NCBI RefSeq assembly: GCF_021869535.1
Contig: NW_026262674.1
Span: 2,108,001 to 2,172,000 of the forward strand
Direction: 5' to 3'
Origin: Mytilus californianus
Taxonomy: Eukaryota
Length of the DNA stretch: 64,000 bases
The notes under the pieces: model-generated
Told to the model about the DNA's origin: nothing
Database searches by the model: none
The model's input: only the letters and a program-made list of their open reading frames with translations
Shown: piece after piece, positions 1,351-48,535 of the stretch
Position numbering within the stretch: the first letter of the stretch is position 1
Layout of the letters: every line of letters begins with the position of its first letter
Translations under genes and position numbers: made by a program

Positions 1351-1505
1351 TTAGTAAACAGGATTTACACATTTATATTGACATCCTTGTTTGCAACATT
1401 TCTTCTTCCCAAGACAAGATGAATCGTTTCTACAGCTTCGTCGGACATAACACCTTGAGTTTGGGTATCGGTCTCTCGGGCATTTGTCTGGTGTTGGCTT
1501 ATTTT
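1351..1505 (-). CDS. Terminal exon: basic WAP domain ([51 protein letters not shown])
   Basis: 8-Cys WAP spacing; acceptor tttttactttgtag; phase 1; stop TAA. Confidence 0.92.
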
Positions 1506-4500
1506 CTACAAAGTAAAAAGCATTGATAAGACATAAATACAACAAAAATGCACGCGTTGTAGTACTTAACATTCCCCTACGCGCGATTAAAAGTATCGGA
1601 AACAAGAAGAAAATGTCTAACGTTTCCAAGTGCCTCAGTCGCCAAGTGGTTTTAGTAGTAAAACTACTGTATCACTAGCCTGTCAACTCCGCAGCTGTGA
1701 GTTCGAATCTCGAACATGACAGATGCCCTCGACTCCAATCATAATTGACTAGGATTGTCCGCTTTCCTTCGGTAGTTCTCTGAGTGCGGTCAGGCTTCCT
1801 ACATAAAAACTGACAGCCACAATATAGCACAATAGTGCTGAAATGGCATTAAACACCAATTGAGGGTAAAAAATGATCAAAGTTCTTGCCAAATACGGTT
1901 AAGGTTATCTATTCCGGATACAAAATGAAAACAACGCGTCATAAATTTCATGCGTCCGACGCTCTTTCAGGATTTACCTTTATCAGGAACGCCAAAAGCC
2001 GAATATCTACATCTGCTCGTCATGTAATAAAACCAGCTCGTGTAAAAATTACTGAAATGTTCAAAAATAAATTGTGATTACCGTCAGGACAACAAGCAAA
2101 GTATTCATCAGCTGGTCCCCCTAGACAGCTATATCCAGCTGGACACTTGTTAGAGCCGATAACCATTCCACAGGAAAGTGTTGGATGAGGATCACCAAAT
2201 TTACAAGCTATAAATATACAAAATATAAAAATATCTTTTATAATCATGATTAGTATGTATTCATGTATGTATTTGTAGATTCTTCTGTTATTCGGAGCAC
2301 CCCTCGAGAGTTGCAAGGGTACAGTGGAATCCGAGTATACTCCCTATTTTGATTAATGTAGATGTGTCACGAACGTATTTACAACAATATTTACATAGAA
2401 AATTCAAACCCTTATCCAAAAGGAGTACTAGGACACCGGGAAATCTGTTAGTATATTGTGCTCTATTGAAAAATGTGAATAGTTCTTATGTTGTATTTCA
2501 CTGCATAAGTGCTATAAATGTCATCATCATTTGGCTTGAAACATTGACCAATCAATAGCAAATTAGAGTGGCTTTGGTGGTCGAGTGTTCTAGGAAGTTC
2601 CTTTACAGTGATCATGACTAGCCTTTCAACACTAACGATGTGAGTTCGAACACTTGTCGTGGCGATTATTTGACATTGATTGACCGTCGGTGGTTCTTTG
2701 TCTGGGTCATCTGACCTCCACCGCCAGTAAAACATGGTCGAAATGATTGAGCCAAGGTCGCTGAAAGTGTCATAAACACCAAAAAAAAAACAAAAACGAC
2801 CATAGACAATTGACCACTCACGTCTTGAGAACAAGAGTGTACAAACACTAAAGTGTCTTCTGTAGACCGCGTGTCTGGCGTAAAAATATATTATAAGTTT
2901 CTTTTGGCAACTTCTCCTCTAGTTTAATGTTAAACATCTTATTTTATCATTTTGAGCTGGGAGCTCTGGATGAAAACTTATAAAAAGAAACCGGTCTTCG
3001 GTTGGAGCGTAATTGGTATCTTTAATCGTATTGTATAATGCTTTCTAGGACATTAATGTATTCATGTGCCTGTCCCAAATCAGGAGCCTGTAATTCAGTT
3101 GTTATCGTTTATTGCTGTATATCTTTTTTGTTTTTCGTTGATTGTTTTGTACATCAGGCCGTTAGTTTTCTCGTTTGAACTGTTTTACATTTGTCATTTC
3201 GGGGCCTTTTACAGCTTACTATGCGGTATGGGTTTTTCTCATTGTTGAATGTCGTATGGTGACCTATATCTGTTAACTTCTATGTCATTTGGTATCTGGT
3301 GGAAAGTTGTCGCATTGGCAAACATACCACATCTTCTGACTTTTAAATCTATGAAAATCTTGTTTATGATTTAGTTACTTACGGATTTTACAGCAGACTG
3401 AGTTTTTACAGTAGGTTCCTGATGGACACGGTTTACTGTCCAATGGTCCAAATCTGCAAGTCCCTTGAGGCGTCCCCTTTTCACATGCTATATGAATATA
3501 TATGTGCAATAATTACGAATTTTGAGTTGATATATATTTTACAATAAAATATAATACGATAGAAGTCATGTGGGTTTTTTTTAGGAAAACTAATTTCCAT
3601 TTTATGCTTCCGGTTTCATTAGAGGAATTTATTGATATTCTTTTGTTAATATATACTTATCCTTTCTTTAAACAGAAATGTAAACAAAAATGTGTTATTA
3701 ATTTACTAGAACAAATTGTTTCCAAAGACCTATTACGTTATTCCAAATGAGGATTGCAACATCCCTTCTTTCCATCGCATAAAAAACACAGTCAGGTCTG
3801 TTTGAATTGCGACGTATTATTCAATACTATTAATTTGAAATTGGGCGGTTGTAAAGGTTCACTGACATGAATTAATTCGAGAAAAAATATATGTAGAAAC
3901 AGAGTCAAAGGTTAGAGTGCTCCAACGCATAACAGACTAACAACAACGCTATTTGTGAAAAAGTAAAATAAAAAAAATACCGAACTCCAAGGAAAATTCA
4001 AAACCGAAAGTACCTTATCTAATTGCAAAATCAAAAGCACAAACACATCAAACGAATGGAAAACAACTGTCATATTCCTGACTTGATACAAGCATTTCCT
4101 AATGTACAAAATGGTGGATTAAACCTGGTTTTGGTAACATTGGCATAAGTTTAACAATTTTGAGTGAAACTTCAAAGAAAGGGACCAATTTTATCGTACA
4201 ATGTGTATACAATTAACGTTTTAACTCTTTATTTAAATGGTTATTAATTTGAAGTCCCACATAAAGTCAACTGTTGCAGAATTATTATTTTGATTTCAGG
4301 GGCCTTGGTAGCCAAGTAGTATAATTAGTCAACTAAAGTATCACTAGCCTGTCAACACAGATGTTGTGAGTTCGAATCCCTCAAGTGACAAGTGCGCTCG
4401 ACTCTTTATTGACAAGAATTTTCAGTTTTCGTACCGAAGGTCGGTGGTTTCCTCCGGGCACTCCGGCTTCCTCAACAAATAAAAATACTGCCACGAAATA

Positions 4501-7500
4501 GCACAAAAGTGCTGAAGTGGTGTAACGCCAATCAATCAATCCATCATTTCTATCAGATTCAGAATGTTTTAAAGGAAATGTGATGCATTACAAATAGACA
4601 ATACTAACATTCAACTATATGTAAATGCCATGCCAATAGCCCAGTGTGAGACCATTTTTATCAACCATTCTGTTCGGATGTCTGCGAGAAAAGAGTCTAT
4701 AGCTGGAAATATGGAATAAACTACTTGTCAATTTGGTTTATCTCCCCAACACCCCTTTCTAGACATTTCATAAAGCTCACCTTTTTTAGACCTTACTCAC
4801 CAGGTAGACATTGGCATGTCTGACACACATTGACGTCAGACTTATAACCGTATGGACATGGTCTGCTGCATTTTATTTGCGGACATACTGAGAAACAAAA
4901 AATAGATAAATTACACACATTCTAGATATAGATTCATATGATAGTAACAAATATACAGAAAATTATGTTCTAAATATCGTCCAGTTTTAGAGTTTGCTGG
5001 AATAAAAAATAATCAGATACGCTTCCATTGAATTGTTTCATATCTTTCATGTCGGGGCTTTTTATAGTCGATCATACGGTATGGGTTTTTTCTCATTGTT
5101 GAAGGCCGTACGGTTGCCTATTTTTGCTTACATCCTCTTTATTTGAACTTTGGTGGATAGTTGTCTTATTTTCAGTCATACGTCATCTCCTTATTTTTAT
5201 ATTTATAACAAACTGTTTGTTTTCGAGTACGACCTTGCACAGATCATATACGTTAAAAAAATTTCGTCCATCATATGATTTTAATGATTTTTGTTATCTT
5301 TTCCTTTTTGTTTTTAAATTTCATGTTTTATCGTGTATCAGTATTACTTCACGTCATATCACGGTATTCAATTTCAAACCAACCTTCACTGTTGGCACTG
5401 AAATTGGCTTATCGTTTATATTGTTTTTGTACCCAGTATTGGACAATATTTTTAATGCTGTTTATCATAGACTGTAATGGATGTAAAACGTATGGAACAG
5501 AATCGTTCTATACAATTGATCAAATATATCACTACAAACCAGTAAAAGTCTGAAATGGCCTATATCTGTACTCGACTGTACTGATTTTTACTCGACCAGT
5601 CTGAATTGGTCTGAATTTTACTTAATATTACTCGACCCAGTCTTAACCATACTCGACTGTACTGATTTGTACTTGACCCTTATCTTTGCTATTGAAAATA
5701 GTCTAAACTATTACTCGACCAGTCTGAAACAGTCTTAACCCAGTCTGGACCAGTACTCGACCAGCTCTCGACCTATTTTTTCAGTCTGAACCATACTCGA
5801 CCAAAGGTCTGAACAATACTCGACCAGTCTGAACCATACTTTACCAAATAACCTCTGCTTTATAATTTTGATTGTTTAAATAACTTTCTCTTTAACTTAC
5901 ATGACAACAGCCACAATTAAATAAAGATATATATAAAAACATTTTTTACATTCTTTAATAATACATTAGGTATTCTCTTAGATTTGGCAAATCGAGATAG
6001 TTAAATTATCTAATTTAAAAGTCTGAGTCTTGTTAAATAAAAGACTTGTTTTACCTGAAAACCACACCTATACTGAGGGTAATAAAACCTTATTAAAAAT
6101 AAGGTGTTTTTTGTTTGGCATGTGTTTTTTTTTTAAACAAAACTTGATTTTCCTAAATTCCTAAATAAAAACGAATGTAGGACAGAAAGTCAGAGGACAA
6201 AAAGTCACAATTCAGTTTTGAGGTTATTTTTCTTTGAACAATAGAACACTTATTTTTAAAAAAACATTTTTGTATTTTTCTTGAAACAATATCAATAATG
6301 ATCAAATAATTGTTAAGAAAACAAAATGTTACAATGTCTTGGTACTTAAATGGCTTCATGGTGCCAAGAAATATATCCTTTGCATGATTAAAATTTTATA
6401 AATCTTTATTTATCAAATTAAGTCTTATGAACAATTTCCTAAACTGTAAAATGAATATGTGTCATAAAAAGTAAACATTTCAAGATCTTTCTCATAAATA
6501 TTCAATCAATTGTATACAAATTATTTGTGACTTTTTGTCCTATCAAATTTGTGACTTTCTGTCCAGTGACTTTCTGTACTTAGGTTTCATGGTTATATAC
6601 AATAGTTATATAACTATCTTTTAAATGAGGTAACAACAGCCAACAAAATCACTGACATTGTTTAACCTTATATCAGAAATATATCTATTCCTATTCATAA
6701 TTTGGGATATATATATATTTTAAAAGGGATAAAAAATTCAAGAAATGAATAAAATTTTTCTTCTGATTAGGGGTAAACTATAAAGTAATACATCCTGCTT
6801 GACGCACACTGATTAAAAAGATCACACCTGTTCAGAGAGTAATAAATTTTAAATAACATCCATTGAAAATTACAACATCCTGTAAAACTTAAATAACAAG
6901 GCCTTTGAATTCACTAGATAAATAATACACGAGTTTAAGAAAAATATGGTTTTCTTTTTACCTGTAAAACACCTGTACTGAGGTAATTAAACCATTAAAC
7001 CTTATTAAACTGTTTCTTGTATGCCATGTCTTTAATTTTGACAAAACGTATTTAAATTTAATTAAAATAAATTTCTACTGCAACTTTGGAATACATTTCC
7101 TTTTTTAAAAGGTTATCAAGGATAAAAAGATGAAAGTTTTATTATTATTATTATTATATTAAATTTTTGATTTTACAAAACAAAGGTGTCAATTCTAACA
7201 TTTATTAAGTTGCTTTATATACTATTTTATATATATTTTGATAAAAAAAAAATTGAATAACATTTAAGATATTTGAATAATGGTTGAAAGTTATAGTATT
7301 TTTGATGCATAAATCAATGTGAACATGATATCATGTATATGAAAATTCATTTAACGAACTTAATTTATTACATGATATTTTTTTAATCCAACCAGAAATT
7401 TGATCACCTTGTTTTATTTTAATTTTAAATGTGATATACATTTTATATATATATATATATATATGAATAACAGTTCCTAAATTAATGAAAAAATAATATA

Positions 7501-10500
7501 GATAGATACAAAAAATAGGTTTAGGTTGGTTAAGACTTGGTCGAGTATGGTTCAGACTAGGTCGAGTATGGTTCAGACTAGGTCGAGCATGGTTCAGACT
7601 TGGTCGAGAATGGTTAAGACTATGTCGAGTATGGTTCAGACTCGTATAAAATGGTTAAGTACTGGTCGAGTAAAGGTCGAGTACAAGTTCAGACTGTTTA
7701 GTATCGTTCAGACTACAGTCGAGTAATATCAAGTAAATTTCAGACCAATTCAGACTGGTCGAGTAAAAATCAGTTCAGTCGAGTACAAATATAGGCCATT
7801 TCAGACTTTTACTGGTTTGTAGTGTATATGATTAACAAATGAACAGAAGCTTTATCTAACAATATCATTGTTGTGTTCGTAGAAGACCTGTCTTTTGAAT
7901 CACCGTAATCAGGTACGCTCTGACTACGACCTGAAGGAGTTGAAACCTCGTGTAAGTGTTTATAAACTAGACATTTGACACTTTAACATTTTATTTTACT
8001 AACACAGTTTAATCTATTAATGTGTCTGTCCCATGTAAATCAGTGATTGTCGTTTGTTTCTGTATATCATATTTGTTTTTTTGTTTTTTGTTTTATGCTT
8101 TTATTTCGGTGCCTTTTTCAGCTTGTTATGCTGTATGGGTTTTACTTATTGTTGAAGGCCGTACGGCGATCTATAGTTGATTTAATTTATGTTATTTTGG
8201 TCCCTCATTTATAGTTGTCTCATGCTTTTTGCAATCATACCACAACCCACATATCATATTTCGAACAACATGTATCATAAATCTCTTTTTATGTGTGTAA
8301 CGCCATTTATATATGCAATTTGGTGAATGTTACAACTGGTTTACAGTAATTGACCTTTTCAGAATCTAAAGAAATATGACGTTTTTAACCAATCAAAACA
8401 TTTTTGTGTACGTTTTTGAAAATATTACCCATAATACATTAGATTCTACGACGGCGAATTAGGACGCTTTTTAACATACCATAAGGACAGCATACTCCAC
8501 TGCCGCCTGCTGAGGGTGTGTTGCATTGATATCGAGCGGGACATCTTTGTTGACCTGAACCACAGCTGATTGATCCTAATGGACTAACATTACCCTTACA
8601 TCCTAAAATAGAAAACAAAATGTGAAAGACAGACGAAAGATACCAAGGGACATTCAATCTCGTAAGTCGACTACGCCATGCTTAAAAAAGAAAAAGACCA
8701 AAAGATAAACACCAAACTGTTAGGACAAAGTTCAATCAACAAATGAGAACGCATGGAACGAAAAGTACCCAGTTATTTTTTGATGTAATAACGAATATAT
8801 AATCAGGCTAATTTCTTTTTGTATATCATCTCACATTTTAAATCTATACAACAGACCATTATTACCTGTTTTGCATCTACAAGTTGGACAGTTGTTTTCA
8901 TCAAGAACATTTCCAAAGGGACAGAATATAGCACAAACAGGTCCACATCTAGGTTCTGTAAAAACCGTAAATGTATTAACATTTATAACATTTTATTTAA
9001 TAATCCTTTTCTAGTATGTTAATCAATTTTTTGAGAAGAAACTAAGAAAGAATATAAATACTTAATAAAATAGAAATATACCATTACATTCGGATTTTCC
9101 TGAACGATAAGGAGAATAAGAAGGAACGTAGGTGGCAATCGAAACATGTACGGATGATGTCCGAAGAATCGAGTTGAAAATACAAATAAAAAATCTCGTC
9201 TAAAAAAAGGAACAGAAACGAAACAAAAGATTGAGCATCGCGAATACCAATGAAAATCAGAAACGAACTCGGTCAAAATGTCAATAAAAGCGATCTAATG
9301 ATTTACAAATACATGTACGCAGACATTTCTAGCAGGAATGCGGATTTCCAATCAAATTTTCGTGTGGAATGTACTTTGCACATTATAAAACTGTTGCAGC
9401 AACTGTTTCTGCTTCTATCTTACATAACATCTTTTGCCTGTGTGAGAACACATTTCTTGTACAAACTCATTCGTCCAAAATCTTGTTTCTACGAAATATT
9501 CGCCACTGTACATTAAAATTACAATCAACTAATATTGAATAATGGAAGTTCTTTCACCCTAAAAACCGAAAACATTTGCGACTTTAATGTGGAATAAAAG
9601 TATACCATTAGTGCATTGATAATAAGTTGTACAGTAAAATCAGTGATACGTAAAGAAAAAAAATTATCAAAAAAGGTACACCACAGAATCTTTTTTCGTA
9701 AAGATTTCATGATCCATCATAATTTTCATGCGGCGATAAAAACCTTTTGCGCTGATTTCGGCGTAAAACAAACATCAATCAATCAATTACTCAATGATAT
9801 ACCAGAACTACGAATTCCTACATATTATCAACTATTGTAGGAACATCCTGCATCTGTTTAAAACGTAAAACTTTCCTTACAAAACGTAATGGAGGACGTT
9901 CATTAAACAAGACCGTGGGAACAACAATGAAATTCTATATGTGATTGCACCGCGCCTAAAAAAATACAAAGTCAAATGTGTAATTATGTTATTCAATTAA
10001 AGTAGGTATTATTGAATGTTGAACGTAAGTCAACCAGACATATATGTATATATATAATTGATGTCTCACCAAGTATAACATAAATGATTTTATTTTTTAT
10101 TTTATTAGAAAATATTGTTTTGTTGAGTATGTTCCTTTTATGTCTTTACTTGTTAAATTTGTATATACAATGCTGTACGTAAACTTCAACACTTTTTACC
10201 TCTGCTAGTGAACTATCAGTTCCCGAGGGTATCATCAGCTCAGTAGTCAGTACTACGGTGTTGACAAAATTTATAAAAACCTTTCTAAAATTGTCCGTTT
10301 ATAAATTTTGAAATTATAAAGAAACTAAGGTTTCAACTCCCTCAGGCAAAGTTGATCTTAGATGATTTAGGCTATTTTAAAGGTCCTTTTTGTCATATAG
10401 CTCTTCAACTGGTTCGGTTCTTATACATTTTTGGCTTTCACATTTTTCGGCTTTTAAGGTTCCTGATAAAGGTAAATAAAAAAAAGCGCCTTGGACTCAT

Positions 10501-25500: not shown

Positions 25501-28500
25501 CATGACCAACCTATTGTGTTTATTGTCAATTTGTTCTAGTCTTGAATATGCACGAAATACTTGCCATTGATTGTTAAGCTACAGACAATCAATCAAATAA
25601 CCATTCTCAAAATCCTTTTATGCCTATTGTTACACTGTTTTAGCTTGTTTTAATCCATAGAACGAGACTCTTAAGGTACCGACCATTCATCCTCGTGGGA
25701 AAAACCATTATTATTCTTACATTAATAAAACAAAAAATAAAAAATCAATCACATATTGGAACATTTTCTAAACTCTATGTTTAAAACCCTAGCCTTTCAT
25801 TTACAATGGAATTAAACGATTTTTATCATTTCCCTCTCTCTCTGAAAACCAATACATTATTTACCCCACTCCCTCCTCAAAAACAAATATAACTGAAAAA
25901 TAAAAAAAAAGATATGAATCGGTATGCTCATAAAAAAAGTTTAAAGAAAACATTCATTCAATTATATGTCATGTACATGTAAATTACGTGCACATGTTGT
26001 TTACTGGTGTGAACAATTTTCATGTACAGGTAATTAAAACCAATGTACAGGTAATTAAAACCAATGTACAGGTGAGAACAAATTTAATGTGAAACCAGTG
26101 TGCATTACATGAAACTAATTGTAAACAGGTTTACAGTCAACGATGTTCGGTGTGAAAACGGCCTTAGTCCCATGTGCATGTTTTAATGTTTATACCTAAT
26201 CTATAACGTATAATCGACAAAGAATACTTAATTTAAGGATTGTTGATCAGAAACTTTGGATTCTTATTAATTGTCGGGTTATGTTGGCGAAGTTTACAGA
26301 CCTTGATAAAAAAATCAACACAAAAAGCATGGAGCAAGAGAAAAATAAGTGAAATGATAAAGCAATGTTAAATTGTTTTTTGTGTATTTTCAATTCTATC
26401 CAATTTTTTTTATTTTCTAATCTTTGTTTTAACTGTTGTAAAATGATGAATTGTAAAGATTTTTCTGAATCGGTTGATACTATTTTCCGTCCAAATATGT
26501 TTTCTTTTCTTTCATCACGTTTTTTCAGCTATGCGATTGCCGCATTTCAAACGAAAGGTCATTGCATAAAGGAAAAGCAGACGACGGTTTAGGCTGGTCC
26601 TCTCCCTTGCAACATATACCTTATATCTGTCAGAGCCAAACAGATAAAGGACAGGGAACCAGTCTAACGACGGTTTTTATAAAATGAAGGATTTCCCTTT
26701 AAACAAAAGACCTTATACACGTGTTTTGTAGTAAAATGTAGCCATTCAAATATATAAACATATTCATCTTGTCGTTAAATATTTAGAGACTTTAAGATCT
26801 GATCTGATAATATGACTTTTCAGGTAATCATTTTAATAAAATAGTTGATAACAGATGTTCAATCATTAAGATGTCATTATTTATTTTTGTAGTTACATGA
26901 AAAATTACTGGCAATCTGATTAATGTTCTGATAATTTTTACATCAGCCAATGAAATTTCAGCCTTCAAATTTTTGAATGTGTGTATTACCCCGACAAAAC
27001 CAGAGGATCCCGAAAGGTCTTTAAAACAGAAAGTAGAACGGAGCGTTTTCAGATCCTTGTATGCCAAGCTTAAACACAGGAACTGTATTTTAATCAGATT
27101 GAATTACTTGTAAAATGAACTTACTACTTTTACAGTCTGCGTCAACATGACAGTTAGAAATCACACGAATACGTTTACAAATTTCTGGTACCTCCTTCGG
27201 AAATGACGGACAAACTCCATGTCTAGGTTTTGGGGGCTACAATAAAAAAAAATCAAATAAAAGTACACGCTTGGGAACATTGACGAAAATAAGAAGTAGT
27301 ATATCGAATACAATAAAATATCGTTTGCCTTCAAATAATACGAATACACTAAAACGGAGCTCTTTTATATTTAAAGATTAACATTTGTATTCTTGGAATG
27401 AGTAATATAGACACTTAATGTTCATCAAAAAGGTGGTCATTTTAATGGACAAGCGACAATAGCCTTTTTATCTAATATTTATTTATTTTTGTATCTAGAG
27501 ATTATATCAAAATAAGTATACGTTTTCATTTTGATAAAAATAAATAGGATTCGTGAATGCGTTACATTTGGAAAATATTTACTCACATTTGGTTTTACAG
27601 GATATACACATCCTGTTCCACAAATAACCCCGCAACATATTTTACCTGTAACGTGAACATAAAGTATATATTTTCGGCAAGTTATAAACTTATAGAAATG
27701 TAAATCCGTAATTTATCACAAGAAGGAGTTTAACTGTATTCAATAAATCGGTTGTTTTCTTTTCGCATCGCGGTATTTCTGTGAACGATGATAACCATGA
27801 GTTATGTGTCAGGTTCAAGAATAATGTTTATATTAAAATGCATATGTTGACATCAAAATTTTCATTACAAATGTATCCATGTATTACAAAAAAAAAAAGA
27901 CTAGTTGACTCGTATGTCTAAAATTGACAAGTTAAACGGCTTTAAAAAATAAGTTGTCGATAAGAAATGTTTTATCTAATATTTTATAATTTACGTAAAA
28001 TTATGTCATAGTACTAGAATGAGCAGTACTCAATATATACAGATAATTGTATTAATCCACAGATACGATTTCCATTGACCATTGGAATCAGTGGTAGGAT
28101 ATCAACTCACAGGTAAAGCTACTCACTAAACGAACACTTTTTACGGCAAGTGACCCCACGATTTCAGAATGGTGTTCTGTGTTTGAATGTCTCGCTTTCA
28201 TTTGAGATGGAAAACAGCCACCAAATCGATCGCTTGTTTATACATCATACAGCACATTCGTTTTAGGAGCTTAAAAAAAACCTTACACGTCAAAGATACA
28301 ATTGTTTAATACCAAACAGTAACTTTATTACCTAACTTACCACGACAAGAAGATAAAACTTATGAAGCGGAATGAAATCCTTAGTAACTTTTTTGAAAGA
28401 TGAAAAGAATCTATATCAGAAACAGAGGATTACTAAGAAATTAAAATAACACTTTTACATGAAGCAAAAACATAATGAAAGCTTGAAATCAATGCAACGA

Positions 28501-31500
28501 CAGTTTTGAAAATTTAAATCGAGGATTGCTTAAAATAGGAAAATAACAGCTTTGTCTGAACCAAAAATATAATGAAAGCTAAGGATGTAAAGGCTGTACT
28601 GTAATCCATGCAACACAAATTTTCACAATTTAATTCGAATCTTCAAAGTTAATCCAGCAATGAATGTTATTAATTATAAATTAACCTTTTTGACATTCTT
28701 TATCATGACTACATGCCTGGCTGAATAACAAACATTGTGGTTCGGGTTTTCGCACAGCCGGACAGCCTGGTCGAGGACCCTGCAATATTGATTGTCATAA
28801 AGTTCATAAATTACATTGACAAATTTCATTTTTAGAAACTAAACGTACAATTCTGTTATAATGACAACTGCTGCATCGTATTGTTTTGTTCTTGCTTTAA
28901 AAAAAAATCAGAACATCTGCAAAATCATTTACCTGCAGAGTTTTGTTTTACTACATTAAGCCTTAATTTATGGGAACTTCTTTACACAGAGAAATATTTA
29001 GTTGCAAAACATTAAACGTAATGCAGTGGTCGAAGATATCAAACAAATCCAATAAATTTCATCACCTCAAACAGTACGAATAAACAATTTCTGGACAAAG
29101 TTGACCTATGACTACTTGTTAAAAAAAATTAGCTACACGATGTTTTTTCAAAGAATGGTGGAGAAAAACAAATATTTTTATAAGGGAAGGATGATTTTTA
29201 ACATTTTATTTCAATAAATAAAAGAGTCAAATGTATTTTATTATAGAAAAACAAAGGATATGACACAAAATCAGTACATGCACATCAATAAAAAAAACAC
29301 ACAGAAAAAGCAAAGGATCAGCGCTTTTATTACCTCAAAGTCACAGTGAGACCTTCAAATCGGAGCAGAAAAAAAACCCCACCTCACGTTCAAGTTTAAG
29401 ACGCCCCCTAGAACCGGTTTGATTATACGCGTATAAGTAATAGCTACTTACCGATATCGGTTCTTTACAGTTCTGAGATCCACAGATATCTGGGCAGCAT
29501 TTCTTACTACCTGGAAAAGGGGAATAACAAGTGTACTTAGAATAAACTCAATTGGCGTTTTCAGTGTCAACTTCCGAAGCAAGGTTATCGGCTCCTCAAA
29601 TTTTCCCGAAATCCTGCTTTTAATACGGTGATTGTTTGTCGAGTTTATGAGCTTCGGTACTTGCTTGGAAGTTGGTACAGTGTGCTACTATTTAGAACAT
29701 CTCTTGCAATGATGTCATTGGTAGACACATGCCGACCAATTAATTGTTAGATATTTTATTTGCACTTCAGGATGTTCGCTACTCTTCTTTTTGACTTTTT
29801 GTCAGATATTCCTATTCCTCTAGTATTATCCATGTAGTGCCGATGAAAAAAAATTTGCCCGCTAACCAATATTTTATTTTCATTATTTTATTATATATAA
29901 TTAAAAAGACATTTTTCAAAATCTCATACAATCCTTGTTATTTATTCAGAGTTTTTGAAAGAAAAATGGAGCCAATTTAAAATGTAATACAAGTCTACAG
30001 AGAATCATTTCCCGCCAATTTTTGTAATGGCTTATATCTCGAAAACAAGGAAACGGACCCTACATTTTTTTCGGCTCTTTTAGTTCCGTTACTTTAATAC
30101 TATTATGTTTAACAGTCTTTTTAAAAGCTTGTTATTTTGCAAAAGAGTAGCGAACATCCTCTAGCAAACAGAAGTGGTGTGTTGTTTTACTGTTGCTGTT
30201 ATCTCAATCTGATTAAAATACAGATCCTGTGTCCAAGCTTGGCTTAAAAGGATCTGAAAACGCTCCGTTCTACTTTCTGTTTTAAAGACCTTTCGAAATC
30301 CTCTGGTTTTGTCGGAGTAATACACACCTTTAAAAATTTGAAGGCTATAATTTAATTGGCTGATGTTATAATTACCAGAACAGAAATAAAACTGAGAGTT
30401 GTCAGATCCTTGTACGCTAAGCTTGGACACAGGATATGTATTTTAATCAGATTGCTGTTATCTTGAATTAATATACTAGTACTTTAATGCTGAGATAACA
30501 TCTATACTTGTTCCGAAAATAATCAAACAAGAACAAGTCGGACGATTCCATGGGAAACTAAACCATAAGTCCATTACAGATAACAGTCAACATTACAGAT
30601 AACAGCCAACAAAATACTTCGCAGACAAATTGCTGAGCCACACGATCTCAACTAATTGCCGGCAGTGAACCCAATAATTTAGTAACGATACGCACTTTTC
30701 GTTCGCCTAGTATCTCTCCAAAAGGTTAAAAAATCACATGAAATGCTGATATATATTATCGAGACCTTGCATTGTTTATTGTTTATTTTAGACTTTTGGA
30801 ATTTGGATATACGTTTTAATATGTTATACATAAAAAATGAGATGTGAGTCATATCGGTGAACATGAATTTGACATTTAATGTCCCTTTACATGTATAAAA
30901 TTTAAAGAGGGAATCATTTCCCGCCAATTTTTAATGGGTTATATCTTCAAATAAGGACACTTTTTTTACTTTTTGAGTTCCGTTATTTATATGCTTTCAA
31001 TTTATAACAGTCTTTTAAAAAGTTTGTTATTTTGAAACGGTGGAGCAAACATCCTTTAACAAACAGAAATGATGTGATAATATTTCTATTGCTGTTGTCT
31101 AGAATTTATATACTAGTGTTTTAATGCTTATATAACATCTATACTTGTCTCAAAATAATCAAACAAGAACAAGTCGGACGAGTCCATTGGAAACCAAATC
31201 ATAAGTCCATTATAGTTGACTGTCAACCAAACACATCGACGAAAAGTGGCTTAGCAACACGATCTCAACTAATTACCACAAGACGGGTGCCACATGTGGA
31301 GCAGGATCTGCTTACCCTTCCGGAGCACCTAAGATCAGCTCAGTCTTTTGTTTTCTATGTTGTGTTTTGTGTAATGTTGTTAGTCGTGTTTGTCTGTTGT
31401 TCTTTTCCTTTTTAGCCATGGGTTTGTTTTCGACTTATGAGTTTGAATGTCCTTTTTGTATCTTTCGCCTTTCTTTTAATTACCAGCAGTGACCCTAAGA

Positions 31501-32872
31501 ATTTTGTAACGACTTGACTCTCCCCAAAATGTTCATTATCACTTCTTGGTAATAGTTTCCTAGGTCTATACATCAATTATCAATAAATCATTATGTACCT
31601 TTACAATCGGCGTCATTTCCATAGCAATTAGAACCGACTCTGGCTCTCTTGCAGAACTCAAGAGGTTTTTCGTTTACAGCGGGACATATACCAGGTTTTT
31701 GCTTTTGTTTCTGAAATTGTAATTTATCACAATAATGTTATACCGACCGAGTTACAGTTTTATTACCCATCAAATGTTGAGATATAGCAGGTTACCCTAA
31801 GGAGTAAGCATTTAAGTCAACAGCTAGACATGAATGTATTTTGTTCTTAATAGTGTCTGGCTAATGTCACTCTTACGGCTTATAAGATTTATTGAACAAA
31901 ATAAGAATCATAAGAAACTATAATTTATGGTATGAAACAGTTCTAGAATTCATCAAATTGAATGAGATAAATATTTTGCGATAAATGTACGAGCATTGTG
32001 TCGTCTTTATATGGTAGAGGGTAGATTTATAAAAAAAAAGTATCACAATGCTTTAAATATGTTGATATTGAACAGAGAGTGTTTAAATGTATTTGACGCT
32101 GGACGTTTTTTTTTTATTAATGCTGTCTAAATCTTTGACTGAAGAAATTTTGATAAATCACATATTAGAGTTCACATCGTCTATGTCATTTCATTTCTGT
32201 AATGAAGATGTTTATGAATTCCGTCCTTATTGGCAATTATACCTGATTTATTTCTCATTACTTCAAACAAACATTACTCACGATTGGGGTGACGCATTCT
32301 TTTCCACATTTTTGTGGGCAACATACTTTGCCTAGAAAATAACAATAACAATTTATTCAACTATTGTGTGTCTGCACAATTTATCATTCATACAATTCAG
32401 AAAAATTTGTGACGCATTCATATTATCATAAAAGACATTATTGCAAGTGATGACATTTATTTGGTAGAATTTCTCTTATTCTTTAAGTCGGTTACACTGT
32501 ATCCAGGTGAAAGAACCTATAACGGTAATTAAAACCAGAAAGGATTGTGACCAAAAGGGGATGTGGTTACATGTAACCGATCGGAATTCAAATAAGCTTT
32601 GAAAGTTAAATTTAATAATTTGTCACCATGATTTCTACTTCGTTTAGATCGGTCTGAGTAGTCGAACAACTGTTTAATTGGCCTATCAAGACTGATGTTG
32701 TGAGTTTGAATCCACTTGTGGCAGGTTCATTCGACTCCAATTTTAATTGACAAGGATTGTCAGTTTTCCTACCGAAAGTCTGTTGTTCTCTCAAGGAGTT
32801 CCGGCTTTCTTCACTAATAAAAACATTTGTGATAAAAGTGGTGTTAAACACCAACCAATCAATCAATTAAAC

Positions 32873-32903
<31 letters not shown>

Positions 32904-34704
32904 GTTTAGATCTGTAAAATACTGAAAGGTAACTTATCAAAAATCAAAACACAAAAGAATTCGTTTAATATAATTATTGTACTTCAATTGTTTACATATA
33001 TTTGAAGCTTGAAGCGTATTTTGGTAATATGAATTTTAAACGTTTATCTTATCTTTAGAATGAATATCGTGTAAATTAGGGGAAATTTCTTATGGACAAT
33101 ATTTTTAGTGTTGTTATTTTATGAGCATTGTTTAGTTGTAATTTTTGTTTTTAATTTTTGGAGTACTTTTAAGTTAAGAAAATGCATTAAACAGATTATA
33201 GTTGTTAACAGTTATACATAGATAACATTGCCGACAAAATAGCTAAATATTTCAAGATATATTTCTAACCCCCATGACAGTTCGTATCTATATAAGATAT
33301 GCGAATTAATAACCACTAAGACATAAATACTAACCATCAAGACAGTTTGTATCTGTGTAAGATATGTTAATTACTAACCACTAAATTAGTTTGTATCTGT
33401 GTGAGATATGTTAATTACTACTCACTTACCAAGACATAAATACTAATCACCATGACAGTTTGTATCTGTGAAATATGTTAATTTCTAACCACATAGACAT
33501 AAATACTAACCACCAACACAGTTGGTATCTCTGTGAGATATGTTAGTTACTAACCACCAAGACATAAATACTAGCCACCAAGACAGTTGGTATCTGTGTG
33601 AAATATGTTAATTACTAACCACCAAAACATTAATACTAACCACCAAGACAGTTGGTATCTCTGTGAGATATGTTAGTTACTAACCACCAAGACATAAATA
33701 CTAGCCACCAAGACAGTTGGTATCTGTGTGAAATATGTTAATTACTAATCACCAAAACATTAATACTAACCACCAAGACAGTTGGTATCTCTGTGAGATA
33801 TGTTAGTTACTAACCACCAAGACATAAATACTAGCTACCAAGACAGTTGGTATCTGTGTGAAATATGTTAATTACTAACCACCAAAACATGAATACTAAC
33901 CACCAAGACAGTTGATATCTGTGTGAAATATGTTAATTACTAACAACCAAGACATAAATACTAACCATTAAGACAGTTGGTATCTCTGTGAGAGCTGTTA
34001 ATTACTCACCACCAAGACATAAATACTAACCACCAAGACAGTTGGTATCTGCGTAAGATATGTTAGTTACTAACCACCAAGACAGTTGGTATCTCTGTGA
34101 GATATGTTGTTAGACATAAATACTAACCACTAAGACAGTTGGTACCTGTGTAAGATATGTTAGTTACTAACCACCAAGACAGTTGGTATCTCTGTGAAGT
34201 ATGTTAATTTCTAACCACCAAGACATAAATGCTAACCACCAAGACAGTTGGTATCTGCGTAAGATATGTTAGTTACTAACCACCAAGACAGTTGGTATCT
34301 CTGTGAAATATGTTAATTTCTAACCACCAAGACATAAATACTAACCACCAAGACAGTTGGTAGCTCTGTGAGATATGTTGATTACTAACAACCAAGACAT
34401 CAATACCAACCACTAAGACAGTTGGTATCTACGTAAGATATGTTAATTACTAACCACCAAGACATAAATACTAAACACCAAGACAGTTGGTATCTGTGTA
34501 AGATATGTTAATTACCAACCAACGAGACGGTTGGAATCTGTATAAGATATGTTAATTGCTAACCAACAGGGCAGTTGGTATCTGTGTAATATATGTTTAT
34601 TACTAACCACGATGACAGTCGGTATCTGTTTGACATTGATCAACTTTTAGGTAACTGTTACATCTCACACTTCGGTTCAATACTGGACAACGTGGATTTG
34701 CTGA
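1351..34704 (-). CDS. Spliced gene (20 coding exons found, 5' end missing) for a multidomain Cys-rich, probably secreted protease-inhibitor/matrix protein: 5 WAP, 5 antistasin-like, 1 Kunitz, 4 lustrin-type Cys modules, 1 unassigned 4-Cys module
   Basis: Exons in transcript order: 34704-34608, 32331-32282, 31710-31599, 29510-29452, 28779-28686, 27645-27587, 20876-20768, 19609-19559, 18031-17942, 16900-16781, 13673-13506, 12554-12465, 11754-11635, 10655-10578, 8955-8866, 8602-8480, 4887-4801, 3487-3383, 2207-2082, 1505-1351. All have AG acceptors, all but the last have GT donors, and phases match. They join into a stop-free 660-aa frame ending in TAA at 1351-1353. Confidence 0.88.
1631..1860 (+). 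mobile_element. tRNA-derived SINE (resembles molluscan V-domain SINEs such as RUDI)
   Basis: A-box/B-box-like gccaagtggt...gtgagttcgaatc; tail aaactgacagccacaatatag...gcattaaacaccaat; four further copies in the window. Confidence 0.7.
2082..2207 (-). CDS. Exon: lustrin-type Cys module ([42 protein letters not shown])
   Basis: 6-Cys C..C..CP.GY.C..CCP pattern; tag acceptor, GTAATC donor; phase 1-1; 126 nt. Confidence 0.88.
2567..2790 (+). mobile_element. tRNA-derived SINE, same family
   Basis: B-box gtgagttcgaac; tail ctgaaagtgtcataaacacc. Confidence 0.6.
3383..3487 (-). CDS. Exon: lustrin-type Cys module ([35 protein letters not shown])
   Basis: 6 Cys; tag acceptor, GTAAGT donor; phase 1-1; 105 nt; not in the ORF track. 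Confidence 0.85.
4299..4542 (+). mobile_element. tRNA-derived SINE, same family
   Basis: gtgagttcgaatccc B-box; V-like core ggtggtttcctccgggcactccggcttcctc; (caat)n tail. Confidence 0.75.
4801..4887 (-). CDS. Exon: antistasin-like module ([29 protein letters not shown])
   Basis: 6-Cys antistasin-type spacing; acceptor ttttttgtttctcag, donor GTGAGT; phase 1-1; 87 nt. Confidence 0.87.
5530..7824. mobile_element. Non-autonomous TIR DNA transposon with CACTAC...GTAGTG termini (probably CACTA/EnSpm-like), intronic
   Basis: Long near-perfect TIRs (cactacaaaccagtaaaagtctgaaatggcctatat...); many subterminal ~20-bp actcgaccagtctgaa repeats at both ends; flanked by tatat on both sides; no transposase ORF. 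Confidence 0.75.
8480..8602 (-). CDS. Exon: lustrin-type Cys module ([41 protein letters not shown])
   Basis: 6 Cys; ttttag acceptor, GTATGT donor; phase 1-1; paralogue of 11635-11754. Confidence 0.88.
8866..8955 (-). CDS. Exon: antistasin-like module ([30 protein letters not shown])
   Basis: 6 Cys; tttttacag acceptor, GTAATA donor; phase 1-1; paralogue of 12465-12554. Confidence 0.88.
10578..10655 (-). CDS. Exon: antistasin-like module ([26 protein letters not shown])
   Basis: 6 Cys; tttttcag acceptor, GTAAGT donor; phase 1-1; 78 nt. Confidence 0.87.
11635..11754 (-). CDS. Exon: lustrin-type Cys module ([40 protein letters not shown])
   Basis: 6 Cys; tttttttcag acceptor, GTATGT donor; phase 1-1. 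Confidence 0.88.
12465..12554 (-). CDS. Exon: antistasin-like module ([30 protein letters not shown])
   Basis: 6 Cys; tttcag acceptor, GTAAAT donor; phase 1-1. Confidence 0.88.
12853..13110 (+). mobile_element. tRNA-derived SINE, same family
   Basis: gtgagttcgaatccc; gcactctggtttcctccaccaataaa; gttgaaagtggcgttaaac. Confidence 0.75.
13506..13673 (-). CDS. Exon: Kunitz/BPTI domain, P1 = Lys ([56 protein letters not shown])
   Basis: Canonical 6-Cys Kunitz with F.YGGC.GN.NNF motif; tttttag acceptor, GTAAGT donor; phase 1-1. Confidence 0.93.
13650..13889 (-). repeat. 88-bp tandem repeat (~2.7 units) copying the Kunitz-exon acceptor plus the first ~25 exon nt
   Basis: Acceptor-like tag|AT junctions with exon-like starts at 13673, 13761 and 13849 (88-bp spacing); the copies read DCH* and DYHYPKQP*. 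Confidence 0.8.
13890..16088. mobile_element. 2.2-kb composite insertion: two ~452-bp direct repeats (13890-14341, 15638-16088) around a 1.3-kb non-coding core; 4-bp TSD ACAT
   Basis: Repeats are near-identical; each has imperfect TIRs ggcccgagaacacagttat / ataactgtgtccttggacc; acat at 13886-13889 and 16089-16092; removing the insertion restores the interrupted 88-bp unit. Confidence 0.8.
16781..16900 (-). CDS. Exon: 4-Cys Pro-rich module of unassigned family ([40 protein letters not shown])
   Basis: Strong acceptor tttcttacttgtgtttttag; donor GTATCA (an earlier possible donor GTAAAG would end the exon at 16853); phase 1-1; 120 nt open. Confidence 0.72.
17942..18031 (-). CDS. Exon: antistasin-like module ([30 protein letters not shown])
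   Basis: 6 Cys with D.NGC..C.C motif; ttcttttttag acceptor, GTAAGT donor; phase 1-1. Confidence 0.88.
19559..19609 (-). CDS. Exon: C-terminal half of WAP4 ([17 protein letters not shown])
   Basis: CC..C..C pattern; ttttcag acceptor, GTATGT donor; phase 1-1. Confidence 0.85.
20768..20876 (-). CDS. Exon: N-terminal half of WAP4 with two extra Cys ([36 protein letters not shown])
   Basis: tag acceptor, GTCAGT donor; phase 0-1; joins in frame to 19559-19609. Confidence 0.85.
21165..22560 (-). mobile_element. Decayed Penelope-like retroelement reverse-transcriptase fragment, intronic and sense to the gene
   Basis: Motifs [58 protein letters not shown] and [37 protein letters not shown], interrupted by in-frame stops and frameshifts. 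Confidence 0.85.
24660..26163. mobile_element. Non-autonomous PIF/Harbinger-like element with a SINE nested inside
   Basis: Imperfect TIRs ggccgtgctcacattga / tcggtgtgaaaacggcc; tta on both flanks (TWA-type TSD). Confidence 0.55.
25297..25597 (+). mobile_element. Second SINE-like dispersed family (other copies ~48870-49205 and ~57040-57295)
   Basis: Shared core gtacaagtac.cagccac.tc.ggtcaga...ttgcaa.gcaaaatttctgt and tail gccac/ttgga..ttaagcaac.a.caatc. Confidence 0.55.
26912..27101. mobile_element. Internally deleted copy of the same MITE, in the opposite orientation
   Basis: Shares its interior and caatctgatt/aatcagattg ends with 30205-30454; flanks aattactgg / aattacttg (8/9 match). Confidence 0.65.
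27587..27645 (-). CDS. Exon: C-terminal half of WAP3 ([20 protein letters not shown])
   Basis: tacag acceptor, GTGAGT donor; phase 1-0. Confidence 0.86.
28686..28779 (-). CDS. Exon: N-terminal half of WAP3 ([31 protein letters not shown])
   Basis: ttgcag acceptor, GTTAAT donor; phase 0-1. Confidence 0.85.
29452..29510 (-). CDS. Exon: C-terminal half of WAP2 ([20 protein letters not shown])
   Basis: cttgttattccccttttccag acceptor, GTAAGT donor; phase 1-0. Confidence 0.87.
30205..30454. mobile_element. 250-bp MITE, Mutator-like (9-bp TSD ctgttatct)
   Basis: ~36-bp TIR caatctgattaaaatacagatcctgtgtccaagctt; TSD at 30196-30204 and 30455-30463; empty site visible in the duplicated copy near 31090. 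Confidence 0.8.
31278..31476 (+). mobile_element. ~200-bp high-copy dispersed element (ggagcaggatctgcttacccttccggagcacc family) with an 8-bp TSD taattacc; relatives at ~17209-17420 and ~53870-54090
   Basis: TSD at 31270-31277 and 31477-31484; absent from the twin copy near 30655. Confidence 0.65.
31599..31710 (-). CDS. Exon: N-terminal half of WAP2 ([37 protein letters not shown])
   Basis: KPG.CP WAP start motif; tttcag acceptor, GTACAT donor; phase 0-1. Confidence 0.87.
32282..32331 (-). CDS. Exon: C-terminal half of WAP1 ([17 protein letters not shown])
   Basis: ttattttctag acceptor, GTGAGT donor; phase 1-0. Confidence 0.87.
32650..32903 (+). mobile_element. tRNA-derived SINE, same family
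   Basis: gtgagtttgaatcc; aaagtggtgttaaacacc; (caat)n tail. Confidence 0.7.
33265..34629. repeat. Minisatellite of alternating 44-bp and 21-bp subunits (65-bp dimer) derived from the WAP1 exon end and its donor site
   Basis: Units actaaccaccaagacagttggtatctgtgtaagatatgttaatt and actaaccaccaagacataaat; the last unit overlaps the exon end at 34608-34629. Confidence 0.88.
34608..34704 (-). CDS. Exon: N-terminal half of WAP1 ([32 protein letters not shown]); the most 5' exon securely found
   Basis: ttttaaccacag acceptor, GTTAGT donor; phase 0-1. Confidence 0.84.
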
Positions 34705-35491
34705 CTGTGGTTAAAAAAAATAGATAGTATTTTTATTTATATTAAAAATGCTAATATATATGAATACAACAGTTTAATAGTAATTAAATATTACACCCAA
34801 TAGAAATAGATCCCCAAGTATATTATATTATGTGTGATTAAAGAAAAATATATCTCTAGGTACGAACTTACACAAACTTTTTAATTGTTGTAGGATACGA
34901 ACAGTGTACTTATTTATCGTTCTTTGTTTCATCATTAATGCCTATACGAGCAAGTTTACGAAAGTACTACTTCTTATTAATTCTCTATTACATATGAATA
35001 AGTTTCTTTTTGGCTTATTACATTATAAATTATCAAGTTATGATTCTTAAATTATACACAATTATGTAGCGTCAGTTTTGATCTATTTTTCAAAATTTAC
35101 ATCACAATTCAGCACAGATGACTTTGGCTGAAACCTATGATCCATAGAATTGGCACCCTTTTGTAACAGAACACATTGGATTGTAAGTTTCAGCAAATGT
35201 TTTTTTTTTTGACTGACTTTGGTGTCTATACTGTACTCTTATGAAGACAACTGGTTCACTTAGCATTTAGGGGTTTTAATATATATACAGATTAAAATAC
35301 CAATTTGAGAATATGGCCCTTTTGCATATTTAATTATTTTCATTTACATTCAAGGCCACATTTTTGCAAAAGTGAACTTGGTCTTTAAGTCCATGATGCA
35401 ATCGATGTTTTATTGTTATAATGTTTAACTGGATTATTTCTGATAAGTTTTTAAATGATTTTAAATGGATGACGGTCAATATGATTTGACT

Positions 35492-47400: not shown

Positions 47401-48535
47401 TAGTAAGAGGGAAAGCCTCACACAGGTAAAGAAGGGGCTTGGAACAAAAAGTAGTAAGACGAAAAATATTAGATAGGGAAAAAAGGGGGCTGAATACAAC
47501 AAGTGGTAAGACGGCAAGCCTTAGACAGGGAAAGGAGGGGCTGGAAACAACAAGTAGTAAGACAGAAAGCCTTAGACAGGGAAAGGAGGGGCTGGGAACA
47601 ACAAGTGGTAAGGCGGAAAACCTTAGACAGGGAAAGGAGGGGCTGGGAACAACAAGAAGTAAGACAGAAAGCCTTAGACAAGGAAAGAAGGGGACTGGGA
47701 ACAACAAGTAGTGAGACAGAAAGCCTCAGACAGGGAAAAAAGGGGACTGAGAACAAGAAGTAGTAAGACAGAAAGCCTTAGACAAGGAAAGAAGGGGACT
47801 GGGAACAACAAGTAGTAAGACAGAAAGCTTTAGACAGGGAAAGAAGGGGACTGGTAACAAGAAGTAGTAAGACAGAAAGCCTTAGACAGGGAAAGAAGGG
47901 GACTGTGAACAACAAGTAGTAAGACAGAAAGCCTTAGACAGGGAGAGAAGGGGACCGGGAACAACAAGTAGTAAGAGGGAAAGCCTCACACAGGTAAAGA
48001 AGGGGCTTGGAACAAAAAGTAGTAAGACGAAAAATATTAGATAGGGAAAAATGGGGGCTGAATACAACAAGTGGTAAGACGGCAAGCCTTAGACAGGGAA
48101 AGAAGGGGAATGGGAACAACAAGTAGTAAGACAGAAAGCCTTAGACAGGGAGAGAAGTGGACTTGGAACAACAAGTAGTACGAGGGAAAGCCTCACACAG
48201 GTAAAGAAGGGGCTGGGAACAAAAAGTAGTAAGACGAAAAATATTAGATAGGGAAAAAAGGGGGGCTGAATACAACAAGTAGTAAGACAGAAAGCCTTAG
48301 ACAGGGAAAGAAGTGGGGATGGGAACAACAAGTAGTAATACGGAAAGCCTACGACAGATAAAGAAGGGCTGGAAGCAATAAGTAGTAAAACGGAATGCCT
48401 CAGACAGGGAAAGAAGGGGTCTCGGAACAACAAGTTGTAAGACGGTAAGCCTTAGACAGGGAAAGAATGAGGCTGGAAACAACAAGTAGTGAGACGGAAA
48501 GCCTTAGACAGGGAAAGGAAGGGGGCTGGGAACAA
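35492..48535. repeat. ~13-kb satellite array of 51/52-bp monomers (~250 copies) with higher-order repeats
   Basis: Consensus cttagacagggaaagaaggggactgggaacaacaagtagtaagacagaaagc (40/52 purines); block duplications at offsets of ~3554 and 981 bp. Confidence 0.97.

Follow-up and report, generated by a model that had tools for sequence, protein, structure and literature searches.

The shell matrix of Lottia contains mosaics of WAP and antistasin domains (PMC3374290), and bivalve shell proteomes include WAP and Kunitz inhibitors (PMC5854119), two families also enriched in the foot and mantle of mussels (PMC5549309). Lustrin A, from the nacre of Haliotis rufescens, and other Lustrin_cystein (PF14625) proteins combine lustrin-type Cys-rich modules with a C-terminal WAP. 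All of these module types are found together in a single gene of Mytilus californianus, located in a 64,000-nucleotide stretch of contig NW_026262674.1 (positions 2,108,001 to 2,172,000; here called the window, to which all coordinates refer). The gene lies on the minus strand and comprises 23 small exons, from 53069 to 1351 (51.7 kb), whose conceptual translation is a product of 733 aa with 114 Cys. AG/GT borders flank every one of the 23 exons, their phases are compatible and no stop interrupts the joined frame. A first-pass annotation, made from the sequence alone, had proposed 20 of them, between 34704 and 1351, and every one is present on the minus strand with canonical borders; its stop-free frame of 660 aa also exists, but the path is 665 aa long and has no start codon. 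The addition of exon 1 and two overlooked exons gives the present totals and a fifth WAP-like module, thus correcting the earlier exon count, protein length and number of N-terminal WAPs.

From its N-terminus, the product consists of a signal peptide, four WAP domains, a 10-Cys WAP-like module, an antistasin repeat, a 4-Cys hairpin and a Kunitz domain, which are followed by two antistasin/lustrin-type/antistasin cassettes, two lustrin-type modules and the C-terminal WAP. Exons mostly encode one module each and have phase 1-1 borders, a layout that explains how the number of modules varies between species (594 to 1139 aa). The signal peptide is encoded by exon 1 (53022–53069), which contains the ATG, is 16 residues long (MWQAGILILYLIQHAH) and ends at a phase-0 GTAAGT donor; its presence supports the earlier proposal that the protein is secreted. 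It starts MWQAGILILYLI, in agreement with the N-termini of all homologues (P0048, P0047, P0046, P0001 and P0003), and has its collinear counterpart in exon 1 of the M. trossulus orthologue (locus L001, 10001–10048). A TATAAAT box at 53123–53129, about 60 nt 5′ of the ATG, was read from the sequence as a putative core promoter, and the region containing promoter and exon 1 (52980–53430) shares 78% identity with the M. trossulus locus. Since the signal-peptide exon lies beyond a 13-kb satellite (35492–48535; 52/103-nt units, about 253 copies), the satellite falls inside intron 1 (34705–53021, 18.3 kb), whereas intron 1 of M. trossulus is about 3.8 kb long and holds no copy of it. At the opposite end, the last exon (1351–1505) encodes the C-terminal WAP (Pfam, 36.2 bits) and a TAA stop (1353–1351), with two AATAAA poly(A) signals just 3′ of it (1337–1332 and 1292–1287).

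Each of the domains WAP1 to WAP4 is split across two exons at position 25 of the Pfam profile. WAP1a (34608–34704) was located by Pfam and WAP1b (32282–32331) by the splice path, both together with tblastn searches using homologues. WAP2a (31599–31710), WAP2b (29452–29510), WAP3a (28686–28779), WAP3b (27587–27645), WAP4a (27125–27236) and WAP4b (23800–23858) are connected by RNA: run X1 yielded one 1972-nt minus-strand contig in which the five exons from WAP2b to WAP4b are spliced exactly at the predicted borders (CT..AC on the plus strand), while its loose ends map to the end of WAP2a (31601–31630) and to the start of WAP5a. Six of the 22 junctions are seen directly in RNA, among them WAP4b to WAP5a, which ties the WAP block to the remainder of the gene. 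The first-pass annotation had instead joined WAP4b directly to the antistasin module, which requires a donor at 23796; this splice is contradicted by the RNA, where WAP4b, with a phase-0 donor, has 23800 as its last base and runs into 20876. The divergent fifth module, between WAP4 and antistasin module 1, is built from WAP5a (20768–20876), into which the contig runs, and WAP5b (19559–19609), both identical in P0048; it scores 16.4–19.3 bits against the Pfam WAP profile, below the gathering score.

Downstream, the five antistasin repeats reach 32–40 bits against a Pfam gathering score of 21.2: module 1 (17942–18031; 40.2 bits), module 2 (12465–12554; loop C-E-I-F-C), module 3 (10578–10655; loop C-K-S-C), module 4 (8866–8955; loop C-A-I-F-C, guamerin-like) and module 5 (4801–4887; 35.1 bits). 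The Kunitz/BPTI domain (13506–13673; 76 bits) has a Lys at P1, as its K11 aligns with K15 of BPTI, and its loop equals that of SmCI domain 3 in the PDB alignment. Pfam thus backs the WAP, antistasin and Kunitz assignments made previously. The lustrin-type assignment holds in that four modules match Lustrin_cystein (11635–11754, 21.6 bits, also supported by a profile search; 8480–8602, 22.9 bits; 3383–3487, 11.1 bits, included in alignment A1; and 2082–2207, 26.6 bits), but with 11–27 bits each of them remains below the gathering score of 27. The 4-Cys module (16781–16900), predicted to form a long β-hairpin (AlphaFold2 pLDDT 82), gave no match in Pfam, Atlas or the PDB, and is seen again in other Mytilus proteins, after antistasin modules.

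The gene is expressed: one RNA data set out of four contains its transcript, and a sample of about 6% of the raw RNA-seq run X21 had no exon reads. The gene is also under purifying selection, with a dN/dS of 0.21 relative to M. trossulus over 2127 sites. This value, the six exact RNA junctions and the 522 aa identical to a RefSeq protein indicate that the gene is not a chance pattern. That protein, P0048 (M. californianus ‘uncharacterized protein ZC84.1-like’, 626 aa), agrees with the window product at every residue from WAP4b through to the stop (100% identity), and all splice junctions in this part are the same as in the window gene. WAP2 and WAP3 are missing from it, the identity of its exon 1, WAP1a/b and WAP4a to the window exons is 81–94%, and its gene extends over 108 kb instead of 51.7 kb, so P0048 is a chimeric model or else represents a different 5′ block, from a paralogue or haplotype. 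A database of 5.8 billion proteins does not contain the 733-aa form.

Orthologues or paralogues, all of them automatic predictions, are found in M. trossulus (‘cysteine-rich motor neuron 1 protein-like X1’, P0046, 1003 aa), M. galloprovincialis (LOC143051872, P0001, 895 aa) and M. coruscus (unnamed proteins P0047, P0049 and P0050). They share one module per exon, the signal peptide and the order of WAPs, WAP5-like module, antistasin, 4-Cys, Kunitz, antistasin/lustrin-type cassettes, two lustrin-type modules and WAP. In some, the Kunitz domain is followed by an additional WAP; they also differ in the number of antistasin repeats (5 to 16) and in the presence or absence of WAP2 and WAP3. None of the five N-terminal WAPs is missing from P0046, and each exon of the M. 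trossulus locus, from the first to the last, is collinear with its counterpart in the window. The gene had been presented as hidden and its architecture as unrecognised, a novelty that is mostly gone because the gene is partly in RefSeq and same-order orthologues are already annotated in three Mytilus species. As the family is annotated, as uncharacterised proteins, the main gain is the corrected gene model.

The product of this single 23-exon gene is most likely a secreted multi-headed serine-protease inhibitor, a role predicted from its modules. An inhibitory function is plausible on the basis of the canonical Kunitz loop with P1 Lys, a textbook inhibitory type kept in orthologues, and of the alignment of the antistasin modules with the half of guamerin, antistasin and hirustasin that bears the reactive site. 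Each disulphide-locked module would act as an independent “head” outside the cell, inhibiting serine proteases by the standard mechanism. The Kunitz head would target trypsin-like enzymes, and the WAP heads and antistasin modules 2 and 4 (C-E/A-I-F-C, near C-M-I-F-C of guamerin) would more likely act on elastase- or chymotrypsin-like or microbial proteases. The protein would shield shell matrix, byssus, mucus or haemolymph, as a secreted matrix or surface, from proteolysis. Several features speak against inhibition: the antistasin modules have P, E, K, A and S as P1 equivalents, three of the five thus having Pro, Glu or Ser, and loops of differing length; the N-terminal 4-Cys subdomain found in leech inhibitors is missing from every one of them; and WAP5 scores below threshold. 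We know of no biochemical activity for the Lustrin_cystein and 4-Cys modules, which also counts against this reading.

It is possible, with a clearly lower probability, that the protein has a structural or matrix role in shell, byssus or adhesive, its inhibitor folds being co-opted as stable, disulphide-rich building blocks, as modifiers of mineral growth or to bind metals. The non-canonical P1 residues of several antistasin modules would fit such a role. Literature precedents point the same way and weigh against inhibition: structural or crystal-growth-modifying roles are discussed for the shell-matrix proteins lustrin A and WAP-bearing perlwapin (PMC5854119), and metal binding has been proposed for a byssal antistasin-like protein of Perna (PMC6508894). 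WAP-antistasin mosaics are, moreover, abundant in the Lottia shell matrix (PMC3374290), and the sea-star adhesive protein Sfp8 carries repeats of both domains (PMC9382459). The lustrin-module relatives P0002–P0006 join Lustrin_cystein and WAP through Pro-rich linkers, like lustrin A, but the 733-aa product has none of the Pro-rich, Gly/Ser-rich or acidic low-complexity stretches typical of matrix proteins; the conserved Kunitz loop also argues against a purely structural protein, and no proteomic match was found. Inhibitory and structural roles are nevertheless compatible.

An immune or antimicrobial effector, secreted by haemocytes or epithelia and acting on microbes or their proteases, appears improbable. 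The fast change in module number between Mytilus species would fit an arms race, and crustacean and abalone WAP/antistasin proteins are antimicrobial or immune-responsive according to work cited in PMC9382459 and PMC5549309, but the overall dN/dS does not point to pervasive positive selection. That the exons belong to two genes, an upstream WAP-only one and a downstream antistasin/Kunitz/lustrin one, or are pseudogenised relics is very hard to sustain: the first four exons of P0048, drawn from elsewhere over its 108-kb range, make the gene models of the region unstable and X21 had no exon reads, but the RNA contig runs unbroken from WAP2a to WAP5a, P0048 links WAP4b, WAP5 and antistasin module 1 and continues to WAP6, the M. 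trossulus gene is collinear throughout, and the frame is intact under the selection described above, so the single mosaic gene proposed initially is supported.

The multi-headed inhibitor proposed here can finally be compared with systems beyond Mytilus. Kunitz domains and lustrin-type Cys modules are likewise combined in secreted matrix proteins of the nematode ZC84.1 and papilin types, the former being the origin of the RefSeq name, but these have no WAP or antistasin arrays, and the similarity is limited to single domains (6–9% query coverage), papilin-like proteins being matched through the Kunitz domain. The sea-star proteins Sfp8, Sfp3 and Sfp15 and the byssal antistasin-like protein of Perna viridis are also secreted, Cys-rich, repetitive WAP/antistasin proteins of marine holdfast secretions (PMC9382459, PMC6508894), with other partner domains (FAMeT and others). 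Lotgi1|201804 and Lotgi1|239125 of Lottia gigantea are secreted mollusc WAP arrays interrupted by antistasin-like domains as well, for which Kunitz, Lustrin_cystein or 4-Cys modules are not reported (PMC3374290); their presence in the shell was established by mass spectrometry. Lustrin A, as described in the literature, contains neither antistasin nor Kunitz modules, and the mussel protein in turn has none of its Pro-rich spacers, Gly/Ser-rich or basic domains; all four mussel lustrin-type modules score below the Pfam gathering score, unlike those of the relatives P0002–P0006 and P0010, which pass it and also carry WAP. With respect to leech antistasin, hirustasin, guamerin and bdellastasin, the five mussel modules correspond to the 26–27-residue, 6-Cys reactive-loop half of the 10-Cys domain, with two loops of different length and P1-equivalents that depart from the Arg or Met of the leech inhibitors, and modules 2 and 4 have loops near the C-M-I-F-C-P-N-G of guamerin.

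The gene was found on the minus strand of the M. californianus contig, where it extends from 53069 to 1351 (51.7 kb) and comprises 23 exons encoding a 733-residue protein with 114 cysteines. The sequence is free of N, with a G+C content of 30–35% except for a strongly skewed block at 36–48 kb. From ~34.7 kb down to 1.35 kb, the minus strand contains Cys-rich stop-free stretches in the order listed in the first-pass annotation, which had described a 20-exon gene. Listing the AG acceptors and GT donors shows that each single-exon module is flanked by phase-1 introns and that each N-terminal WAP is composed of a phase 0–1 exon followed by a phase 1–0 exon. Two further exons with exact phase fit, WAP5a (20876–20768, phase 0–1) and WAP5b (19609–19559, phase 1–1), encode a 10-Cys WAP-like module located between WAP4b (donor 23800, phase 0) and the first antistasin repeat, Ant1 (phase-1 acceptor). 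With this pair, the model from 34704 to 1351 contains 22 exons and 717 residues. Without it, a 20-exon, 665-residue frame is still open, but requires a weaker donor at 23796, and this is evidently the model first proposed. That stop-free path from WAP4b (23796) to Ant1 was ruled out, as an RNA contig and four homologues run from 23800 into WAP5a.

Both the 22-exon and the 20-exon versions lack a start codon. A 5′ exon adjoining WAP1a was discarded, since a stop just upstream of 34710 closes the open frame. A scan of 34705–64000 for an ATG together with a hydrophobic stretch and good donor site returned a single candidate for exon 1, on the minus strand at 53069–53022. This exon codes for a Met and, after it, the hydrophobic core GILILYLI, which is kept in all the full-length homologues, and is therefore predicted to be the signal-peptide exon of a secreted product. 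A TATAAAT box, a candidate core promoter, lies 60 nt 5′ of the ATG, and two AATAAA signals are found within 65 nt past the TAA stop. When seven homologues were compared with the window by tblastn, all 23 exons were matched, and no match was obtained beyond them for the additional WAP and lustrin-type modules known from M. trossulus and M. galloprovincialis. The gene initially proposed is real, although its model was incomplete, having missed exon 1 and the WAP5 pair. Rfam and tRNA scans detected no RNA genes in the window.

RNA reads and contigs were examined over the 5.9 kb at 23760–29700, a stretch connecting the WAP block with the region common to the gene and the RefSeq protein. A 1972-nt contig from run X1, whose organism label is identical to that of the genome runs, matches the minus strand in spliced form, with the segments 29452–29510, 28686–28779, 27587–27645, 27125–27236 and 23800–23858. 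All four skipped parts are bounded by CT..AC on the plus strand, that is, GT..AG for the gene, and the loose ends of the contig match exactly at 31601–31630 (the end of WAP2a) and 20846–20875 (the start of WAP5a). Six junctions thus coincide exactly with the prediction. The join between WAP4b and WAP5a contradicts the 20-exon path and places the WAP block in the same transcript as the downstream block. Regarding the rest of the contig, 326 nt precede WAP2b, compared with 307 coding nt in the model, leaving ~19 nt of 5′ UTR, and by length arithmetic its 3′ end would land in the exon of Lus4, the last lustrin-type module; this is consistent with the gene model, short of proof. Over the same 5.9 kb, raw RNA-seq reads of X21 (~6% sampled) and the contig runs X22 and X23 gave no exon coverage, only short repeat-like matches, and expression is therefore restricted. 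Three stretches of 35–50 nt in the WAP4a–WAP4b intron (25305–25340, 26631–26666 and 26940–26988) have many read and contig matches in each of the four runs. The matching reads are flanked by sequence unlike the window, and the stretches are probably pieces of a dispersed repeat carried in abundant transcripts.

The modules were classified against Pfam. For WAP (PF00095, a 41-position profile with a gathering score of 20.8 bits), the last exon, WAP6, scores 36.2 bits, and the paired half-exons of WAP1–4 give separate matches at profile positions 1–25 and 25–41, their spliced counterparts in orthologous proteins reaching 25.7–36.4 bits, above the threshold. WAP1–4 and WAP6 each contain eight cysteines with a central CC doublet and regular spacing, in agreement with the PF00095 pattern. 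WAP5, at 16.4 bits (in the identical copy of the RefSeq protein) and 19.3 bits (M. trossulus), falls short of PF00095, contains ten cysteines instead of eight and, judging from its sequence, is WAP-like only. The Kunitz domain belongs to PF00014 (76 bits, with a cut-off of 21), its fold model agrees with Kunitz structures, and K11, aligned to K15 of BPTI, is the P1 residue. Among solved structures, the closest relative is domain 3 of SmCI, an annelid inhibitor; the two domains share the same ten-residue loop. The domain is missing from the hmmscan and precomputed Pfam lists for three full-length homologues (P0046 of M. trossulus, P0001 of M. galloprovincialis and P0049 of M. coruscus). A true absence was ruled out, as the excised domain scores 77 bits, and its omission in such long Cys-rich proteins is probably a composition-filter artefact, able to mislead architecture searches.

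The five antistasin modules score 32.2–40.2 bits with PF02822, a 26-residue 6-Cys repeat with a gathering score of 21.2, and belong to that family. They align to the 6-Cys reactive-loop half of guamerin, antistasin and hirustasin, spanning only residues 24–50 of hirustasin and 30–56 of guamerin, and are not complete 10-Cys leech-type domains with a basic or Met P1, the N-terminal 4-Cys subdomain being missing. In the three leech proteins, P1 is the residue following the second Cys; by this rule the five modules carry P, E, K, A and S at the equivalent position. The loops of Ant2 and Ant4 (C-E/A-I-F-C-P-F-G) resemble that of guamerin (C-M-I-F-C-P-N-G). The four lustrin-type (Lus) modules score 21.6, 22.9, 11.1 and 26.6 bits with PF14625, each below its gathering score of 27. 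A profile built from their alignment (A1) reaches five proteins (P0002, P0004–P0006 and P0010) at E-values of 1e-13 to 1e-47, which themselves pass PF14625 with 38–67 bits and also carry WAP domains. Finally, the 4-Cys module has no match in Pfam (E ≤ 1), the ESM Atlas, the PDB searched with Foldseek, or 48,161 chains compared with VIA-align. Its AlphaFold2 model is a long β-hairpin (pLDDT 82), and in other Mytilus proteins it is always located after an antistasin repeat.

The same Lus profile, searched against 1.84 billion representative proteins, found only 45 in all, and the family is therefore narrow; the best full-length matches and their relatives are, without exception, Mytilus predictions. 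They include a 626-residue M. californianus RefSeq protein (P0048, “uncharacterized protein ZC84.1-like”), P0046 (1003 residues, “cysteine-rich motor neuron 1 protein-like X1”), P0001 (LOC143051872, 895 residues) and three M. coruscus proteins on one contig, and their N-terminal signal peptide is the same as that of the exon 1 candidate at 53069. The gene is thus already partly annotated in RefSeq, P0048 being 100% identical to our model from WAP4b through to the stop codon at every junction, WAP5 included; it lacks two WAP domains. Its first four exons are just 81–94% identical to the window copies (53069–53022, 34704–34608, 32331–32282 and 27236–27125) and appear to have been taken from another place. 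The P0048 gene range covers 108 kb (GCA_021869535.1) and is overlapped in its entirety by a 1183-residue WAP/antistasin model. This suggests that a tandem paralogue or haplotype copy lies upstream and that the P0048 model may be chimeric or have an alternative 5′ end. Homologues of each of the five N-terminal WAPs, WAP2 and WAP3 among them, are present in P0046. The M. trossulus locus (L001), with a gene of 31 kb, is collinear with the window from 53430 to 1220 and has an identical exon layout. A codon comparison between the two orthologues yielded pS 0.357, pN 0.096 and dN/dS 0.21, with WAP2, WAP3 and WAP5 under constraint equal to that of the other modules. The 733-residue form with WAP2 and WAP3 was not found in the databases searched.

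The introns contain several repeats. A 13-kb satellite at 35492–48535, with 52/103-nt units in ~253 copies and a strongly purine-rich plus strand, is located wholly within intron 1 (34705–53021). It is lineage-specific, since the orthologous M. trossulus intron of ~3.8 kb has no copy of it; nor does that intron contain a copy of the minisatellite at 33368–34629 (44/65-nt units, ~18 copies), which extends from the WAP1a donor over the initial 1.2 kb of intron 2 and is unmatched in the M. trossulus locus. A dispersed, SINE/MITE-like repeat of ~180 nt is found in introns of both genes with 70–86% identity, at 3150–3336, 5028–5201, 8072–8244 and 18661–18852 in the window and at about 4940–5130, 8970–9160, 13360–13555 and 24950–25127 in L001. 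The minus strand at 21490–22584 carries intronic ORFs of 182 and 101 residues, which are retroelement-like and have the appearance of a mobile-element remnant; neither this region nor the other long intronic ORFs match Pfam.

A broader reading, which we consider improbable, is that the locus is part of a mytilid-specific, fast-evolving cluster of combinatorial inhibitors, generated by phase-compatible exon shuffling and swapped 5′ blocks and including the 4-Cys domain. Ant–Lus–Ant cassettes and the frame-preserving WAP2–WAP3 block would be gained, lost or alternatively skipped, and tandem paralogues would supply common 3′ exons with alternative 5′ blocks, made up of promoter, signal peptide and WAPs, an idea hinted at by the 108-kb RefSeq model, with its first four exons unlike those of the window. 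The family would also bear a previously unclassified 4-Cys β-hairpin domain, always after an antistasin repeat.

For an uncharacterised Mytilus protein in which one chain joins four Cys-rich module families, this work yields a corrected, RNA-supported model of 733 residues and 23 exons that includes the signal peptide as well as WAP2/3 and WAP5. The full sequence permits the proteomes of shell, byssus, mucus and haemolymph to be searched and the domains to be expressed for inhibition assays. The family is a clean case of module gain and loss via phase 1–1 exon shuffling, and the 4-Cys module represents a small domain without family or fold assignment. On sequence grounds, a secreted multi-inhibitor is a reasonable reading of the product.

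With respect to known systems, Cys-rich repeats alternate with Pro-rich domains in lustrin A, and its C-terminal WAP is preceded by a Gly/Ser-rich domain and a basic one (PMC3374290, PMC5854119). The 733-residue product is not of this type: its similarity is limited to the lustrin-type modules and the C-terminal WAP, and it has no Pro-rich or Gly/Ser-rich regions. A second group of proteins reached by the Lus profile (P0002, P0004, P0005 and P0006) combines modules of the Lus3/Lus4 type with WAP domains and long poly-Pro linkers, to which P0006 adds a tail rich in Gly and Tyr; this group is far closer to lustrin A in character. Among the abundant proteins of the Lottia shell matrix are WAP arrays interrupted by antistasin domains (PMC3374290), and bivalve shell proteomes contain WAP and Kunitz proteins (PMC5854119); in mussels, both types are enriched in the foot and the mantle (PMC5549309). 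WAP and antistasin repeats have further been described in adhesive proteins of sea stars and in a byssal protein of Perna (PMC9382459, PMC6508894). The novelty that the first-pass annotation had attributed to the architecture is largely removed, the gene being partly annotated and this type of mosaic known. Because WAP/antistasin/Kunitz mosaics have already been described from mollusc shells and marine adhesives, current views are not overturned, and the Mytilus protein is a variation on a known theme.
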